Source of the DNA: Mobula hypostoma
Taxonomy: Eukaryota
Length of the DNA: 64,000 nt
Direction: 5' to 3'
NCBI RefSeq assembly: GCF_963921235.1
Contig: NC_086104.1
Location: 149,420,001-149,484,000 of the forward strand
The notes under the pieces are model-generated. The model was not told the DNA's origin. It did not search any database and saw only the letters and a program-made list of their open reading frames with translations. The translations under genes were made by a program, and so were the position numbers. Positions 1 to 49,300 of the stretch are shown piece by piece. Position 1 is the stretch's first letter, and each line of letters opens with the position of its first letter.

Positions 1-931
1 TCAACGGTAGCAACGAGAAGGCGGCATGTCCTCGGCGGTGGGGAACCTTAATGATGAATGCCGCCTTAGTCTTGGGTACTACGGAGGCTAGTAGCCATGA
101 TGGGCCATCATTCCCCTCTCCCTGCCCACCTCCCACTCTCAGTGTATCATCGAGACCCGTATCAGAATCAGGTTCATCATCACTCACATATGTCATGAAA
201 TTTGTTTTGTGGCAGCAGTACAGTGCAATACATAAAATTACAACAGTACTGTGCAAAAGTCTTAGCACCTGATGTGCCTAAGACTTTTGTACAGTACTCA
301 ATGTCAGTGATAATAAACCTGATTCGGATTCTGAGGTGGGAACAGCAATGGTAACTAAGGATGGAATTATAGCAACACTGAGATGGGATATTGGCTTAGA
401 AAATCAAAATGGAGTACTGGTCTGAGAGGAGTTAAATAGCACCAAAGGATATTGGCACCAGAGCTTTTTGCAGATTTGGGGAACTTCTTCCAGTTCATCC
501 GTGAAACAGTTTAAATCTCCTGTCCTCATGTCTCTTTTTCAAGGTGGCTGGGGACCTGTTGGAGTCCATGATCTATAGCTGTGCTCAAACTCTGTTTTTA
601 ATGGGCAGTGGGGTTCTCGCTCTTTGGAACTCTCCGAGCGGCCTGCTTTTTGGTATCTCCAGGAGCGGCTTGGAAGACGTTTGCCTTCTGGGTGCGGCCC
701 TGTGGATGACACGATTCCTCACCGATGATGCTCAACTGAAGCGCAGCGGGAGATCGAAGCATCAAGACAGCGGTTGGAGGCCTCTGCGCTCGAGCAATCT
801 CTCTCTCTCTCTCGACGATGAGAGAGTGTCTGCTGGTTCTCAAGTTGGGGGAACTCGAATAAGCAACGTGGCAGATTGTAAAATCGAAACGACGAGCTGT
901 TGGCCCTCCGCCTCTTGCTGTGGCAGGGGTG

Positions 932-1076
932 NNNNNNNNNNNNNNNNNNNNNNNNNNNNNNNNNNNNNNNNNNNNNNNNNNNNNNNNNNNNNNNNNNNNN
1001 NNNNNNNNNNNNNNNNNNNNNNNNNNNNNNNNNNNNNNNNNNNNNNNNNNNNNNNNNNNNNNNNNNNNNNNNNNNN
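932..1076. other. Assembly gap (run of N)
   Basis: Contiguous N bases; ORFs 544..1098, 598..1092 and 719..1144 are artefacts of reading through it. Confidence 0.99.
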
Positions 1077-2607
1077 TAGGATAGATAGTCATTTTTGATG
1101 GATTCTAGATCACGGTTTCTTTGGGGATTTCCTATTGCTTGCATGGTAGGTAGAGGGGTGGTGGGGTTGATATTTTTGCTGCTACTTGTATGTGGGAAGG
1201 GGAGGGGGGTTTTGGGGTTCTAGCATTTTTCTGTCATTCATTCTTTGGGCTTTTATTTCTCTCTGTTTCATAGATGTCTGTGAAGAGTAAGAACTTCAGA
1301 TTGTATACTGTAAACATTCTCGGATTTTGAATTGAACCATTGAATTATCAATAAGGTATAGCATAAAACAGGAAATTAGAAATACATTTAACTGCAATAA
1401 CCATGTGTTACTTCATTCTCTATTTAGACTAATCAAACCTAATTAGCATTAATAAGGTAGGGAGTGAATTTTTGGATTGAGCATGAGATTTTTTTCTACC
1501 AGTACATTAAGGAATCAATGCAGGAACAAGCCATTGTAAACTGCATACTGTGCAATAAGGGATAATTTAATAATCTTGTTATGCTAGATGAAGAGCAATT
1601 ATTATCAGATAGAACTCGTCATTAAGATGGGAAGTGAGGTACAGTAAATTCTCATTCATCCAGTATTTATACATCCAGAATCCCCAGTCAACCAGCAAAA
1701 AACATTAAGGATTTTATTTCAAGCATTATGCAAAATAATTCATTTCAGTTCGTTTATGCTTATAGGCTAATTAACAGTGACATCCGTTCTGAAGATTTGG
1801 CACCTCATGTCATGGTGAGTGGTTGCTAATTTATTTTATTTTAATATTGCTTGGCCAAAACACGAAAAAACTGCAGTGTGAAATATTGTTATTTGAAAGG
1901 GTAAGGGGGCAGATGTAGTTCAGCAATTTATTTGAAGATTTATGCACAGAATCCTAGTGTGCGATGTTTTGTTTTGAATAATGCTCATGCAAACTGAACT
2001 CCCCATTCATTATGGATACTGTACTGCAGAGAGCATATTGAAATTCATCCCAAAACCTGGGTCCTACATCTGAACAGAAGAAGCTGTGAAAATATGAGGA
2101 GTATGTTGGCCATGGTGGATTTCACTGAAAGGCATAGCAGCAATAGTGAGTAACACTTGTGGAACAGGGAGTCCACCGGGAAGGTTGAAGCCCGGTGTCT
2201 GCAGGCTCTGAGTCCGTGTCTGCCTTTGGCTGGAGGCCTGCCCTGTGTATGTGCATGGGTAGGAGGAAGGAATGGAGTTCGCTTTGCTCTTGCTTCCGCA
2301 GTCTGTATTCTTCAGACAAGCATTAAGGGCGTACCATATTCGCAATGGAGTGCGTGGCGACACTTGTGGGTTGGCCCCAGCACATCCTTGGCTGTTTTGG
2401 CATGACTCATCTCAACATATGTTTTGATATACACAGCACAAATACACTTGAATTCCGAATCCTGAGAAAATTTGGGAACAACAATATACTCAATCATCGG
2501 GCATGAAAAGGGAATGGGGAGGGGGAGCCTACTTACCATCTACCGAGCAGACCCTCAACTTTCTGTAGGCGCAACTACTTACATCAATATTCTATGAATC
2601 TACATCC

Positions 2608-3060
2608 ATATCTTTCATATGTTGAAACGTTGGAGCGACTGGGCTTGTATACACTGGAATTTAGAAGGATGAGAGGGGATCTGATTGAAACATGTAAGAT
2701 TATTAAGGGATTGGACAGGCTAGGGACAGGAAACATGTTCCTGATGTTGGGGGAGTCCAGAACCAGAGGCCACAGTTTAAGAACAAGGGGTAGACAATTT
2801 AGAACGGAGTTGAGGAAAAACTTTTTCACACAGAGGGTTGTGGTTCTGTGGAATGCTCTGCCTCAGAAGGCAGTGGAGGCCAATTCTCTGGATTCTTTCA
2901 AAAAAGAATTAGATAGAGCTCTTAAAGGTAGCGGAGTGAAGGGATATGGGGAGAAGGCAGCAACAGGGTACTGATTGTGGATGATCAGCCATGATCACAG
3001 TGAATGGTGGTGCTGGCTCGAAGGGCTGAATGGCCTACTCCTGCACCTATTGTCTATTGT
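2608..3060 (+). mobile_element. CR1-clade LINE 3' fragment (HER1-like)
   Basis: ORF2 C-terminus LERLGLYTLEFRRMRGDLIETCKII...TRGHSL...FFTQRVV..WNALP, then 3' UTR and (CTATTGT)n tail; a close sibling lies at 61236-61683. Confidence 0.92.
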
Positions 3061-3439
3061 TCCCATAAGGCTTTAATTCACTCTAAGCCTTAACAAAATA
3101 TACAGGAGTCAATACTAATGCCAGCATGTATCGCTCATCCCTATCTGGCCTTGAGCTTCCATTTAAACAGCAGTTGTTCCGACATGGGAAATGGTCCAGT
3201 AAAATTGTACTTCCTGCCCTTACACCTCCAGGGTGCATTTATTTTTGCCATTTACAACTTACAGTATATTCATGACTCAGACAAAGGATTAGTGTGTAAC
3301 ATAACACCAACACTGCAGTCTGAAAGAGGAGGTCGCACAGAGGGTACAAGTAAATGGAGACTAATTTCTTTGACAGGAAATTATCAGGAGGATTAAACTG
3401 TGGTGAAGATTTTAACTATCTTAACAATCCGAAAGAAAG

Positions 3440-4470
3440 CTTTTGGCACATTGGCCTTCATAACTCAAAGTACTGAGTACAGGAGATGAATGTTATGCTG
3501 AAGTTGTGTAAGACATTGGTGAGGCCTAATTTGGAGTATCGTGTGCAGTTTTGGTCACCTACCTACAGGAAAGATGTAAATAAGTTTGAAAGAGTACAGA
3601 TAACATTTACAAGGATGTCGCCAGTCTGGAGGACCTGAGTTAGAGGAAAGATTGAATAGGTTAGGACTTTATTCCTTAGAATGTAGAAGGTTAAGAGGAG
3701 ATTTTATGGAGGTATACAAAATTATGGAGGGTATAGATAGGGTAAATGCAAGCAGGCTTTTCCACTGAGGTTGGGTGGGACCACAACCAGAGGTCATGGT
3801 TTAAGGATGAAAGGTGAAAAGTTTTAAGGGGAACATGAGGGGAAGCTTCTTCACTCAAAGGGTGGTGAGAGTGTGGAACAAGCTGCTGGCACAAGTGGTG
3901 CATGCAAGTTTGATTTCATAGTCATACTTTATCAATCCCGGGCAAAATTGGTTTTCGTTACAGTTGCTCCAAAAATAATAAATAGTAATAGAACCATAAA
4001 TAGTTAAGTAGTAATATGTAAATTATGCCAGTAAATTATGAAATAAGTCCAGGACCAGCCTATTGGCTCAGGGTGTCTGACCCTCCAAGGGAGGAGTTGT
4101 AAAGTTTGATGGCCACAGGCAGGAATGACTTCCTATGACGCTCTGTGCTGCATCTCAGTGGAAAGAGTCTCTGGCTGAATGAACTCCTGTGCCCACCCAG
4201 TACATTATGTAGTGGATGGGAGACATTGACCAAGATGGCATGCAACTTGGACAAGCATCCTCTTTTCAGACACCACCATGAGAGAGTCCAGTTCCATCCC
4301 CACAACATCACTGGCCTTATGACATTTTCAGTGTCTAAGAGAAGTTTGGATAGGTACATGGATGGTAGGGATCTGAGGGCTGTGGTCCCTGTGCAGGTCA
4401 ATGGGAGTAGGCAAAACTGGTTTGGCATGGACTAGATGGGCTGAAGAGCCTTCTTCTGTGCTGTATTTTT
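3440..4470 (+). mobile_element. Degenerate CR1 LINE 3' part, interrupted by a minus-strand Rex1/Babar 3' end (about 3918-4320)
   Basis: CR1 ORF2 LVRPxLEYxVQFWSP-coding sequence on +; the insert is the reverse complement of 7530-7918 (RHRKSFLPVAIKLYNSS). Confidence 0.85.
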
Positions 4471-4777
4471 CTGTTAATCTATCTAGACACAAGAAATCTC
4501 AGATGCTGCAATCTAGGGCAAAACCCCACTAGAAAAACTCAGCAGGCCGAGCAACATCTTTGGAAGAAAAGGGATGGCCAAGATTTTGTTTACTACATCG
4601 GTTCTGGAATCATGCAGCTCAAATCAGAGCTTTCGGCCCACTATGTCCACACTGTCCATCAGGAGTTCACCTTTATTAACCCTATTCACCAGACTTGGTC
4701 TATAGCCTGCCGGACTTTGGTGATTTAAGTGCTCCACTATATATTTTGTGAATGTTCTGAAAGTCTCCATTGCCCAT

Positions 4778-4885
4778 AGTAGCATTAGTAGTACTAGTAG
4801 AGGTAGCACTAATACTAATAGCAGCAGTACTAATAGTTGTGCTAGTACTAATATTAGTACCAGTAGTGGCAACAGCAGCATTAGA
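4778..4885. repeat. Degenerate trinucleotide microsatellite (TAG/TAC/CAG)n
   Basis: tagtagcattagtagtactagtag...; it produces the poly-Leu/Val and poly-Ser ORFs. Confidence 0.85.
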
Positions 4886-5559
4886 GGCAATCCAAAGGAG
4901 CTTTCTCTGACTAAGTCCTTGGATGACAGAGTTGCCTTATCAAGAGAGGCTAACAGTTTGTAATCTAGGAAAATGAGGGACTACTTTACTGAATGATACC
5001 AGATCTTGAGGAGGTGTGACAGGGTAGATGCTGAGATGGTTAGAGCCGATGGGACATTGTACAGCATAACCAGTGGTCATACGAGGTACACAGAGATCTT
5101 TCTTCGCACTGAAGGCAGCAAACTTTTTGGAATTCTCCACCCCAGATGGTTATGGAATCTAGATCATTGGGGTAGAGATTATTAAAGAGGCAGATACATT
5201 TTTGAAAGGTTTGGAAATTAAGGATTGTGGGGTACCCTCACGATATATGACCTGATAATAAAACCTGATTCGGGAACTCACACAGAAGAAGAGATGAGGC
5301 CTGGAGATAGACAGGCTGGGTAGAATTGAAGGGCCGAGCGGCCTACTCCTGCTCCTATTTTCTCGTCTTCTTGACTGCATAATCTAGCCTGACCCAACCA
5401 ACACAGCTCCCCTCCACATCCTAGGCAAACAAGAGGCTGTTCTAAATAGACAGCGCCAGATAACGGAGGAAACGCTGGAGAACTCAACAGGTCAGGCAAC
5501 ATCCACGGAGAGAAATGAACAACCGGCATTTCGAGGGATTGAGGGTGGGATGGAAGGCG

Positions 5560-6010
5560 GAGACGGGGGTGAAATCCACGGAAGATATATTTCTGCAGAC
5601 CTGGTTCCGGGCCGTGGTCGCAACTCACCTGCTTTGATCTCCATGCTGCCGCTGGACCGGCTGCAGGACAGGCAGCTGTCGGCCCCCCGTACCGTGTACT
5701 CGGTCCGCGACTGGAACAGCTCCATCCGACCCAGCAATGAACCAACCCACCCCCGGCCCCGTTCCCCCTCTGCCGGACCCTCCAGGTCCCCGCGACCGTT
5801 GGAGCCAGTGCCAGTGGCCGAGTTTCCAATGAAAACATGTTCCAGCATCAAGGCGCATTCCACGTTCGGGAACTCGCAGCCCTCCGTTCCCGAACGCTGT
5901 ACCACACACGCACCGCTTTCCCCACAACAAAATCAAAATTTCAGCCTCAATGTCTCATACAGCACAGAAACAGACCCTTCTTCCCAACTCGCCTCCGCCG
6001 GATTCATCTG
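5560..6010 (-). promoter_or_regulatory. CpG-island-like promoter/5' UTR of the INPP5F-like gene
   Basis: Locally high GC and CpG density around the ATG exon in an otherwise CpG-poor background. Confidence 0.6.
5629..5725 (-). CDS. INPP5F: First coding exon of an INPP5F/SAC2-like phosphoinositide phosphatase (divergent, probably a paralog); remaining exons not found in the window
   Basis: ATG at 5725 gives MELFQSRTEYTVRGADSCLSCSRSSGSMEIKA plus 1 nt, followed by a CAG|GTGAGT donor (phase 1), in CpG-rich context. It aligns without gaps to the recalled human INPP5F N-terminus MELFQAKDHYILQQGERALWCSRRDGGLQLRP (11/32 identical). BAG3 then INPP5F is the human gene order. Confidence 0.78.
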
Positions 6011-6179
6011 CTTCCAGTGTCACAAGGCAGAGAAACTGACCCTTCGGCCCAACTCATCCGTGCCAGCCACCTAAGCTGGACCCGTTTGCCTGTGTTCGGC
6101 CATATCTCTCGCAACTTCCCTGTCCACGTCTTCTAATAGTTATACCCTCCACTACCACAACCTCTGGAAACTGTTCATT

Positions 6180-6470
6180 TACTTATTTATAGACATACAG
6201 TGCGGAATTTGCCCTTCCCGCCTTTAGAGCTGCACCGCCCAGCAACCCCCGATTTAACCCCAGCCTAATCACGGGACAATTTACAATGGCCAATTAACTT
6301 GCTGACCGCTGTGTTTTTGGACTGTTGGAGAAAACCAGAGCACCTGGAGAAAACTCACACAGTCATGGGGAGAAGGTCCGTACTCCTTGCAGACAGCGGC
6401 GGGAAACTAACCTGGGCTGCTGGTACCGTAAAGCGTGGTTGTAACCACTACGTCACCGTGCTGCCCCAAA
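6180..6470 (-). mobile_element. tRNA-derived V-SINE-type SINE
   Basis: Reverse complement of the 30138-30397 family (tRNA-like head, 'tttcctcccacagtccaaa' core). Further copies at about 10290-10530, 15575-15822, 18940-19110, 35215-35455, 38440-38720, 40550-40790, 47400-47615 and 51412-51600. Confidence 0.8.
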
Positions 6471-6574: not shown

Positions 6575-7918
6575 CTGAGCGGCCTCAATGACTACAGACT
6601 GATGGCATTGACCTCCCACATCATGAAGACCCTGGAGAGACTTGTTCTGGAGATGCTCCAGCCTATGGTTAGGCCACACTTAGATCCCCTCCAGTTCGCC
6701 TACCAGCCCCAACTAGGAGTTGAGGATGCCATCATCTACCTGCTGAACCATGTCTACGTCCACCTGGACGAGCCAGCGAGCACTGTGAGGGTCATGTTTT
6801 TTGACTTCTCCAGTGCGCTCAACACCATCCGCCCTGCTCTGCTGGGGGAGAAGCTGACAGCGATGCAGGTGGATGCCTTCCTGGTGTCGTGGATTCTTAA
6901 TTACCTGACTGGCAGACCACAGTACGTGTGCTTGCAACACTGTGTGTCCGACAGTGATCAGCAGCACTGGAGCTCCACAGGGGACTGTCTTGTCTCCCTT
7001 TCTCTTCACCATTTACACCTCGGACTTCAACTACTGCACAGAGTCTTGTCATCTTCAGAAGTTTTCTGATGACTCTGCCATAGTTGGATGTATCAGCAAG
7101 GGAGATGAGGCTGAGTACAGGGCTACAGTAAGAAACTTTGTCACATGGTGTGAGCAGAATTATCTGCAGCTTAATGTGAAAAAGACTAAGGAGCTGGTGG
7201 TAGACCTGAGGAGAGCTAAGGCACTGGTGACCCCTGTTTCCATCCAGGGGGTCAATGTGGACATGATGGAGGATTACAAATACCTGAGGATACGAACTGA
7301 CAATAAACTGGACTGGTCAAAGAACACTGAGGCTATCTACAAGAAGGGTCAGAGCCGTCTCTATTTCCTGAGGAGACTGAGGTCCTTTAACATCTGTCGT
7401 TACGATGCTGAGGATGTTCTACGAGTCTGTGGTGGCCAGTGCAATCATGTTTGCTGTTGTGTGCTGGGGCAGCAGGCTGAGGGTAGCAGACACCAACAGA
7501 ATCAACAAACTCATTCGTAAGGCCAGTGATGTTGTGGGGATGGAACTGGACTCTCTGATGGTGGTGTCTGAAAAGAAGATGCTGTCCAAGTTGCTTGCCA
7601 TCTTGGACAATGTCTTCCATCCACTACATAATGGACTGGTTGGGCACAGGAGTACATTCAGCCAGAGACTTATTCCACCGAGATGCAACACTGAGCGTCA
7701 TAGGAAGTCATTCCTGCCTGTGGCCATCAAACTTTACAACTCCTCCCTTGGAGGGTCAGACACCCTGAGCCAATAGGCTGGTCCTGGACTTATTTCCTGG
7801 CATAATTTACATATTACTATTTAATTATTTATGGTTTTATTACTATTTAATTATTTAAGGTGCAACTGTAACGAAAACCAATTTCCCTCGGGATCAATAA
7901 AGTATGACTATGACTATG
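6575..7918 (+). mobile_element. Rex1/Babar-clade LINE, 5'-truncated, frameshifted reverse transcriptase
   Basis: ORFs 6602-7069, 6942-7520 and 7405-7776 together give DPLQFAY, VRVMFFDFSSA, STGAPQGTVLSPFLF and FSDD; AATAAA and (TATGAC)n tail at 7896-7918. Confidence 0.93.
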
Positions 7919-14455: not shown

Positions 14456-14953
14456 CTACCTTGCAATCTTCTCCAGTTTCTCCAGCACGCCCTGAATCTT
14501 GTGGACAGCCTCTTTACGAATCTGCCGTATGTGCTCTTGACCATTAGTTTCCACCGAATCCACTTCCAGAAGCTGCTTTGTCAGGAGTTCCTCCAGTAAG
14601 CGGTAAGTCTTGTCTCCTCTCTTCCCATCAAACTGATTCACCTCTGCCTCTAGCTGCTGTACGTTGCTCATGACTTGTTCTACTTTAGCTTGGCCTGGGT
14701 GCATGACAATGTCAGCCTGCTCCGTCCCATTGTTTGTGGCGCCAGCGGGCTTCTCTGCAGCACCCTTGTTTTCTGTGCGGGACTTGTACACAGTAGGGGG
14801 AGCACTGTATTCCATCCGTGGGCCTTGGGAAGTGTTTGGCAGCTGGTCTGGGGTTCGGGTTGGGAGGTAGCCCGTGGGCTGCTGGTCATTCCCTGGGAAG
14901 TTGTTGTTCAGGCGAGGCAGGGGGTCTTGGTGGTTTAGTGAATATGGAACATC
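14456..14953 (-). CDS. BAG4: BAG4-like exon 5 (last coding exon, BAG domain)
   Basis: Acceptor TTTTTAG|GAT; DVPYSLNHQD...MEYSAPPTVY...HPGQAKVEQV...RLLEELLTKQLLEVDSVETNGQEHIRQIRKEAVHKIQGVLEKLEKIAR*. The DSVETxGQ..RKEAV motif and the stop directly after the domain match BAG4 rather than BAG3. Confidence 0.95.
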   Translation of the reverse strand, partial: DVPYSLNHQDPLPRLNNNFPGNDQQPTGYLPTRTPDQLPNTSQGPRMEYSAPPTVYKSRTENKGAAEKPAGATNNGTEQADIVMHPGQAKVEQVMSNVQQLEAEVNQFDGKRGDKTYRLLEELLTKQLLEVDSVETNGQEHIRQIRKEAVHKIQGVLEKLEKIAR

Positions 14954-47730: not shown

Positions 47731-49300
47731 CATACATCAAAGTTGCTGGTGAACGCAGCAGACCAAGCAGCATCTATAGGAAGAGGCGCAGTCGACGTTT
47801 CAGGCCAAGACCCTTCGTCAGGACTAACTGAAGGAAGAGTGAGTAAGGGATTTGAAAGCTGGAGGGGGAGGGAGAGATGCAAAATGATAGGAGAAGACAG
47901 GAGGGGGAAGGATAGAGCCGAGAGCTGGACAGGTGATAGGCAAAAGGGGATACGAGAGGATCATGGGACAGGAGGTCCGGGAAGAAAGACAAGGAGGGGG
48001 GGTGACCCAGAGGATGGGCAAGAGGTATATTCAGAGGGACAGAGGGAGAAAAAGGAGAGTGAGAGAAAGAATGTGTGCATAAAAATGAGTAACAGATGGG
48101 GTACGAGGGGGAGGTGGGGCCTAGCGGAAGTTAGAGAAGTCGATGTTCATGCCATCAGGTTGGAGGCTACCCAGACGGAATATAAGGTATTGTTCCTCCA
48201 ACCTGAGTGTGGCTTCATCTTTACAGTAGAGGAGGCCGTGGATAGACATGTCAGAATGGGAATGGAATGTGGAATTAAAATGTGTGGCCACTGGGAGATC
48301 CTGCTTTCTCTGGCGGACAGAGCATAGATGTTCAGCAAAGCGGTCTCCCAGTCTGCGTCGGGTCTCACCAATATATAAAAGGCCACATCGGGAGCACCGG
48401 ACGCAGTATATCACCCCAGTCGACTCACAGGTGAAGTGATGCCTCACCTGGAAGGACTGTTTGGGGCCCTGAATGGTGGTAAGGGAGGAAGTGTAAGGGC
48501 ATGTGTAGCACTTGTTCCGCTTACACGGATAAGTGCCAGGAGGGAGATCAGTGGGGAGGGATGGGGGGGGACGAATGGACAAGGGAGTTGTGTAGGGAGC
48601 GATCCCTGCGGAATGCAGAGAGAGGCGGGGAGGGAAAGATGTGCTTAGTGGTGGGATCCCGTTGGAGGTGGCGGAAGTTACGGAGAATAATATGTTGGAC
48701 CCGGAGGCTGGTGGGGTGGTAGGTGAGGACCAGGGGAACCCTATTCCTAGTGGGGTGGTGGGAGGATGGAGTGAGAGCAGATGTACGTGAAATGGGGGAG
48801 ATGCGTTTAAGAGCAGAGTTGATAGTGGAGGAAGGGAAGCCCCTTTCTTTAAAAAATGAAGACATCTCCCTCGTCTTAGAATGAAAAGCCTCATCCTGAG
48901 AGCAGATGCGGCGGAGACGGAGGAATTGCGAGAAGGGGATGGCGTTTTTGCAAGAGACAGTGTGAGAAGAGGAATAGTCCAGATAGCTGTGAGAGTCAGT
49001 AGGCTTATAGTAGACATCAGTGGATAAGCTGTCTCCAGAGACAGAGACAGAAAGATCTAGAAAGGGGAGGGAGGTGTCGGAAATGGACCAGGTAACCTTG
49101 AGGGCAGGGTGAAAGTTGGAGGCAAAGTTAATAAAGTCAACGAGTTCTGCATGCGTGCAGGAAGCAGCGCCAATGCAGTCGTCGATGTAGCGAAGGAAAA
49201 GTGGGGGACAGATACCAGAATAGGCACGGAACATAGATTGTTCCACAAACCCAACAAAAAGGCAGGCATAGCTAGGACCCATACGGGTGCCCATAGCTAG
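47731..49300 (-). mobile_element. Penelope-like element, 5'-truncated (RT C-terminal half + GIY-YIG endonuclease + terminal repeat)
   Basis: MGTRMGPSYA...FLRYIDDC...LPFLDL...YYKPT (48548-49294) and GVIYCVRCSRCGLLYIGET (48121-49017 frame); one frameshift at the G8 run 48563-48570; TSD ATCAGTAA (47723-47730 and 49301-49308); hammerhead motif at 47790-47825. Confidence 0.95.

Follow-up and report, generated by a model that had tools for sequence, protein, structure and literature searches.

Introduction

Does a short ATG-initiated segment in a CpG-rich patch of the genome of the devil ray Mobula hypostoma mark the first exon of a second SAC2 gene, and if it does, how old is that gene? The question was raised by an original prediction made from the letters of a 64,000-nt stretch of DNA (the window), in which a 97-nt exon was read as the start of a divergent INPP5F/SAC2-like copy, retained beside BAG4 and lost in mammals. 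Vertebrates are regarded as having one copy of INPP5F/SAC2, which has been studied for the control of endosomal PI4P, insulin granule docking and Parkinson's disease risk. In the automatic RefSeq annotation, the gene considered here is already called 'SAC2-like' in many cartilaginous fishes; no paper describing it was found in the literature (INPP5F-like, cartilaginous/ohnolog and BAG4/paralog contexts), and it appears to be an unstudied addition to a family that is itself well known; it does not represent a system of a new kind. The analysis described below leads to the view, held with a probability of about 0.88, that the exon belongs to a real, intact, protein-coding second gene of the SAC2/INPP5F type, derived from a BAG-SAC2 gene pair that would have been duplicated before the origin of the gnathostomes.

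Exon 1 and its sequence context

The original prediction gave no strand; the exon was found to lie on the minus strand, where positions 5725..5629 (ATGGAGCTGTTCCAG...ATCAAAGCAG) run from ATG to CAG and comprise 97 nt, that is, 32 codons and one further base, followed by a phase-1 GTGAGT donor (Table 1). The CpG-rich patch was also confirmed: 5600-5900 is a CpG island with a GC content of 0.65 and a CpG observed/expected ratio of 0.86, compared with 0.45 and 0.35 for the whole window. As had been noticed, the exon is contained within a 137-aa ORF (5492..5905). The exon 1 stretch is single-copy within the window.

An open frame in a GC-rich patch might be a product of chance without being an exon, and comparison of the 32-aa peptide alone with PDB and Pfam returned only noise. 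However, when the same peptide was compared with 1.84 billion representative proteins, exactly five matches were obtained (E 3.7e-11 to 3.5e-4), from Hemitrygon, Hypanus, Leucoraja, Narcine and the chimaera Callorhinchus, and all five align at their own residues 1-32. Their source records title every one of them "phosphatidylinositide phosphatase SAC2-like", and each carries a Sac-domain model match from residue 49 on; two long proteins score far over the Pfam cut-off, and three short fragments reach 20-25 bits against a cut-off of 27. Of the first 74 residues of the Mobula RefSeq protein (P0009), 73 agree with the translation of 5848..5627, and the protein parts from the window at the donor (5628..5623). 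On comparing exon 1 of Mobula with that of the skate (locus L001), 89 of 97 letters were found to be identical, the differences being seven synonymous third-position changes and one replacement; in sturgeon, exon 1 is likewise 97 nt long and of phase 1, a form shared with the skate. Taken with contigs of relatives that end at the donor (see below), the peptide matches, the fit of the RefSeq model and the synonymous bias of a conserved exon already refute a chance origin, the probability of which is negligible. The identity of about 34% to the human INPP5F N-terminus, as given in the original prediction, is in line with the 13 of 32 residues shared with the canonical SAC2 N-terminus of the same ray.

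Exon 1 is the sole exon of the SAC2-like gene that the window holds. Exon 2 was not found in 1..5628, either in the frame listing or by tblastn with P0009 and P0012; it therefore lies outside the window.

Table 1. Features of the SAC2-like locus in the window (positions of the whole stretch; all on the minus strand)
Feature	Position	Strand	Remarks
Beginning of intron 1	1..5622	-	exon 2 past the left window edge
Splice donor of intron 1, GTGAGT	5623..5628	-	kept in skate; RefSeq protein departs from the genomic translation here
SAC2-like exon 1, coding part	5629..5725	-	MELFQSRTEYTVRGADSCLSCSRSSGSMEIKA + 1 base, phase 1; begins at conserved start codon
N-terminal extension of 41 aa in RefSeq	5726..5848	-	in-frame ATG 5848; P0009 begins MLEHVF...
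Candidate core-promoter element, 23-nt block	5822..5844	-	invariant between devil ray and skate; CCAAT on + strand 5826-5830
Last coding exon of BAG4 (BAG domain)	14456..14815	-	ORF in window; coding end 8608 nt before SAC2-like model start

Several repeat-like features were observed around the exon and elsewhere in the window. Two inverted retroelement 3' ends, at 3916-4322 and 7515-7913, are 91-92% identical, flank the CpG island with exon 1 and share a terminal ORF tail (...HRKSFLPVAIKLYNSSLGGSDTLSQ). A run of 145 N is present at 932-1076, within intron 1 of the SAC2-like gene. The stretches 6222-6362, 5329-5375 and 5470-5516 have a very high contig depth in all four runs of relatives (up to about 4e5, in X10) and look like high-copy repeats lying upstream of the promoter or inside intron 1. 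Further away, at 48121-49294 on the minus strand, overlapping long ORFs of 298 and 248 aa were seen; by eye, they resemble a retroelement polymerase with a GIY-YIG-like endonuclease behind it, a Penelope-like pattern.

Probable translation start and candidate promoter

The MELFQ ATG at 5725 is the most likely translation start, because the ME(L/V)F position is where most SAC2-like models begin, as do the Sac2 proteins of animals ranging from oyster to chicken. Among the SAC2-like models, this start is found in Hemitrygon, Narcine, Rhinoraja, Stegostoma, Cetorhinus, Callorhinchus and sturgeon. In the Mobula RefSeq model, the start is placed instead at the in-frame ATG at 5848, which gives a 41-residue N-terminal extension; no stop codon interrupts the frame between 5848 and 5725, and the RefSeq models of Mobula, Hypanus and Amblyraja each have some upstream extension. 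This ATG, however, is absent in skate, and an out-of-frame ATG at 5838 intervenes between 5848 and 5725. The conserved 23-nt block (alignment positions 117-139 of ray and skate) has no codon-like third-position wobble, and the spacer between it and the MELFQ ATG contains ray-skate indels of 1, 7 and 13 nt. The three transcript-like contigs of relatives described below, moreover, end at about 5741-5761. Use of the ATG at 5848 is thus distinctly unlikely, and the RefSeq start codon of Mobula is probably placed 41 codons too far upstream.

If translation starts at 5725, then the segment 5726..5848 is probably promoter and 5' UTR, not coding sequence. The CCAAT motif lies about 100 nt upstream of the MELFQ start codon, which makes the 23-nt block a candidate promoter element, and transcription probably begins below the CCAAT block, a few tens of bases before 5725, within the CpG island.

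Evidence from transcript-like contigs

RNA runs of the window's own species or sample (X1-X6) contained next to none of the exon's words, and the exon itself was found in none of them. Four runs of relatives, three of them presumed to be RNA, were aligned to 5000-6400. One contig (X9 record 24, 357 nt) aligns with 5629-5742 alone; the alignment stops exactly at 5629, and a further 238 letters of the contig have no fit in the window. Two others lie on 5634-5741 (X8 record 16, 574 nt) and 5623-5736 (X7 record 8, 252 nt), so that the transcript-like contigs of three runs halt at the donor or within about 6 bases of it, whereas a genomic contig of a relative (X10 record 1) continues unbroken through 5580-5933 at similar identity. 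As they stop at the donor where the genomic contig runs through, the contigs from X7, X8 and X9 resemble spliced transcripts whose 5' ends fall near 5741-5761 and which would be joined to exon 2.

The gene and its neighbourhood in Mobula and relatives

The SAC2-like protein of M. hypostoma was found by a full-length search as XP_062913399.1 (P0009), a model of 1023 aa with a coding range of about 91 kb on assembly GCA_963921235.1. A 461-aa WW+BAG gene (BAG4) ends 8608 nt upstream of the coding start of the model and a 133-aa LSM gene begins 1.2 kb downstream, all three genes being on one strand. Since 5848 + 8608 gives 14456, the end of the BAG-domain ORF, the locus on the assembly and the window are the same DNA. 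The canonical SAC2 of Mobula (P0127, XP_062927996.1, 1136 aa) is located on a different chromosome; it has a coding range of 282 kb and, next to it, an MCM_bind gene (MCMBP) on the opposite strand. The same MCM_bind arrangement, again on another chromosome, is found for the canonical SAC2 of Hypanus, and it is also the human INPP5F-MCMBP arrangement. It does not hold for SAC2-like, which is flanked by the WW+BAG and LSM genes.

Two findings had been set beforehand as counting against a second copy beside BAG4, namely a lack of downstream SAC-domain exons and the presence of a sole INPP5F copy in the genome. The opposite was observed in both cases: the 1023-aa model contains Syja_N, hSac2 and an intact CMDSLDRT, and the genome has two loci, of which the one studied here has the WW+BAG gene upstream on the same strand and falls in a clade distinct from canonical SAC2 (see below).

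The order WW+BAG, SAC2-like, LSM is also present in the skate Amblyraja. Parts of it were found in the stingray Hypanus (BAG followed by SAC2-like) and the shark Stegostoma (SAC2-like followed by LSM), and no neighbour gene was found within 10 kb of the Scyliorhinus locus. The BAG4/LSM1 neighbourhood is therefore shared by rays, skate and, in part, shark; the sturgeon gene differs in lying between V-ATPase-B-like and LETM2-like genes. In humans, LSM1, BAG4 and LETM2 all lie on 8p11, which is taken to be the counterpart of the 10q26 block with BAG3 and INPP5F. A BAG-family gene just upstream on the same strand is common to SAC2-like and INPP5F/SAC2; when the 10 kb before the canonical SAC2 of Mobula and of Hypanus were searched, BAG3 was not found there.

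Some observations on individual gene models may be added. The SAC2-like coding range extends over about 91 kb in the devil ray and reaches 174 kb in the zebra shark, but is a compact 12 kb in Acipenser oxyrinchus (L002, 10001-22080). Sturgeons have two SAC2-like copies with more than 90% identity, represented by two accessions in A. oxyrinchus and another two in Huso huso. The SAC2-like model of Hypanus sabinus (P0006) has 696 aa and lacks hSac2; it is followed on the same strand by a 293-aa gene with no Pfam hit, and the two are probably one gene split into two models. Four UniRef entries of Cyprinus carpio (P0145, P0157, P0194 and P0195), named 'BAG family molecular chaperone regulator 3-like', contain Syja_N and hSac2. 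These are probably read-through models in which adjacent BAG3 and INPP5F have been fused, and they give a weak hint that the BAG3-INPP5F adjacency may hold in teleosts too.

Domain architecture and catalytic motif

SAC2 is established as a PI4P 4-phosphatase (PMC4395482, PMC4395491). An hSac2 domain joined to the Sac domain is the signature of Sac2; the hSac2 domain contributes to dimerisation and localisation, and the enzyme is inactivated by the replacement C458S (Hsu et al., PMC4395482). The Mobula SAC2-like protein exhibits the same architecture as INPP5F/SAC2 (1132 aa in human; P0127 in the ray), with a Sac domain (Syja_N) carrying the CX5R(T/S) motif, then hSac2, and it shares the MELFQ-type start. 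Residues 90-437 match Syja_N (PF02383) over the full model with 296.7 bits (E 2.7e-88), and residues 619-719 match hSac2 (PF12456) with 33.9 bits against a cut-off of 26, the corresponding value for canonical SAC2 being 69 bits. The protein also matches the human hSac2 crystal chain 4XUU (E 4.5e-16), yeast Sac1 (PDB 3LWT, E 6e-67) and Fig4/Sac3 (PDB 7K1W, E 2.6e-25); the last two have the Sac catalytic domain in common with it but are without hSac2 and belong to different families, as distant relatives.

The catalytic motif reads CMDSLDRT in Mobula, intact as CX5R(T/S), and is kept in nine of the ten SAC2-like proteins. In an alignment of shark, ray, coelacanth and sturgeon sequences (A2), it is invariant, and 138 columns are invariant in all. 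The exception among the ten is Cetorhinus maximus (P0010) with CMDCLDRA, which could be a true change in the basking shark or an error of sequence or model.

SAC2-like and canonical SAC2 are 51% identical over about 717 residues, and the similarity stops after hSac2. No match to the SAC2 tail could be detected for the 278-aa tail of SAC2-like, which gives weak matches among sharks and rays and none to the coelacanth or sturgeon proteins, so that the tails are unalignable between lineages. SAC2-like is the shorter protein, and it evolves much faster than canonical SAC2: in matched species, the identity between ray and shark is 54-59% for SAC2-like and 84-86% for canonical SAC2.

Rapid change of this kind might be that of a gene which is present but decaying, leaving a relaxed, functionless or merely regulatory remnant with no active enzyme. 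The hSac2 score below that of SAC2 (34 vs 69 bits), the tail unalignable to that of canonical SAC2, the short or split models in several species, the altered motif of Cetorhinus and repeated gene loss in other lineages would all be in keeping with such a process. On the other hand, full-length open models are found in many species separated by hundreds of millions of years, the catalytic loop is among the 138 columns kept from shark to sturgeon, exon 1 shows one replacement against seven synonymous changes, and the Syja_N scores are as high as those of SAC2. Decay is on these grounds improbable, and a functional gene is the preferred reading. By its sequence and by analogy with SAC2, the ray protein would be an active lipid phosphatase of the Sac2 type. 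Judging from the kept catalytic loop only, it is probably a PI4P 4-phosphatase like SAC2, and it probably dimerises through its hSac2 domain. Through its unrelated, fast-changing C-terminal tail, it probably has different partners or is located elsewhere.

Age of the duplication

A first tree, unrooted and built with no outgroups, placed a SAC2-like clade (100/99) apart from canonical SAC2. A tree of this kind is unable to separate an old copy from a young duplicate of INPP5F, restricted to cartilaginous fishes, that evolves fast and is ancient in appearance only. The rate of the gene adds to this concern, as SAC2-like is several times faster than SAC2 and fast rows may be drawn rootward. With a 599-aa query piece, which excludes proteins longer than about 1050 aa, outgroups entered the search results; Sac2 proteins of hagfish, amphioxus, crinoid, mollusc, cnidarian, bryozoan and arthropod were obtained, together with "SAC2-like" proteins of coelacanth and sturgeon.

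In the outgroup-rooted tree (47 rows, LG+C20), the SAC2-like proteins of cartilaginous fishes, Latimeria and Acipenser were found to form one clade with support 100/100 and long branches within it, and hagfish grouped with canonical jawed-vertebrate SAC2 (90/69). SAC2-like falls outside the canonical gnathostome SAC2 clade and does not group as a normal orthologue of human INPP5F, as had been expected for a second copy. The same split was given by FastTree for 245 proteins, where the SAC2-like side consists of cartilaginous fishes, Latimeria and sturgeons (Acipenser, Huso) only. The coelacanth (XP_014346506.1) and sturgeon (e.g., KAK1154352.1) proteins are hence orthologues of the ray gene.

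The young duplicate accounts poorly for these results. Forcing SAC2-like and chondrichthyan SAC2 into one clade was rejected (delta lnL 74, AU p 2e-55). When either the coelacanth or the sturgeon row was dropped, the other remained in the SAC2-like clade, with support of 100 and 99, so each joins it singly as well. Both copies, furthermore, are present in cartilaginous fishes, in coelacanth (P0137/P0248 and P0187) and in sturgeons (P0151 and relatives, and P0192), and the position and orientation of SAC2-like beside BAG4 match those of INPP5F beside BAG3. A recent origin is already largely refuted and very improbable. As a duplication specific to sharks and rays is rejected, the copy predates the jawed vertebrates. 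Constraining hagfish outside both copies was not rejected (AU p 0.33), so that the duplication may have occurred either before or after the cyclostome split.

The preferred scenario of an ancient duplication would be as follows. The jawed vertebrates would have inherited two copies of an ancestral BAG-SAC2 gene pair, produced before their radiation and, in the simplest case, by the genome duplications of early vertebrates; of these, one would have given rise to BAG3-INPP5F and the other to BAG4-SAC2-like.

Distribution and proposed losses

SAC2-like is kept in cartilaginous fishes, including the chimaera, in coelacanth and in sturgeons. When a profile was built from nine SAC2-like proteins, its top ranks (1215-1593 bits) were taken by 13 SAC2-like clusters that were already known, with canonical SAC2 at 1167 bits or less, and the profile search found no lineages beyond those already known to have the gene. 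In the protein databases, as searched with a word pre-filter and length limits, no SAC2-like member was found in any tetrapod, lungfish, bichir, holostean or teleost. The predicted loss in mammals thus stands insofar as mammals have none, but the loss is far wider than had been supposed. On the present protein-database data, the simplest reading is that the gene would have been lost at least three times, in the line of lungfishes and tetrapods, in bichirs and in neopterygian fishes.

Significance for the SAC2 family

With these results, the ancient twin of SAC2 now has a gene order, a distribution and a loss pattern. It differs from INPP5F/SAC2 in its chromosome, with BAG4 and LSM1 and not MCMBP as neighbours, and in forming a separate ancient clade. 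A wider interpretation, possible though doubtful, is that SAC2-like is the genome-duplication twin of INPP5F which survives only in slow 'living fossil' lineages (sharks, rays, chimaeras, coelacanth and sturgeons), where it may have a role of its own, at another membrane or through hSac2 pairing with canonical SAC2 that would tune PI4P turnover, a role lost in tetrapods and teleosts.

The gene is a clean added case of a duplication-derived gene lost in the human lineage, such losses being common. The pairing of BAG3-INPP5F with BAG4-SAC2-like is supported as a marker of paralogous chromosome blocks. For the family itself, SAC2-like provides a naturally occurring 'second SAC2' with which function can be compared.
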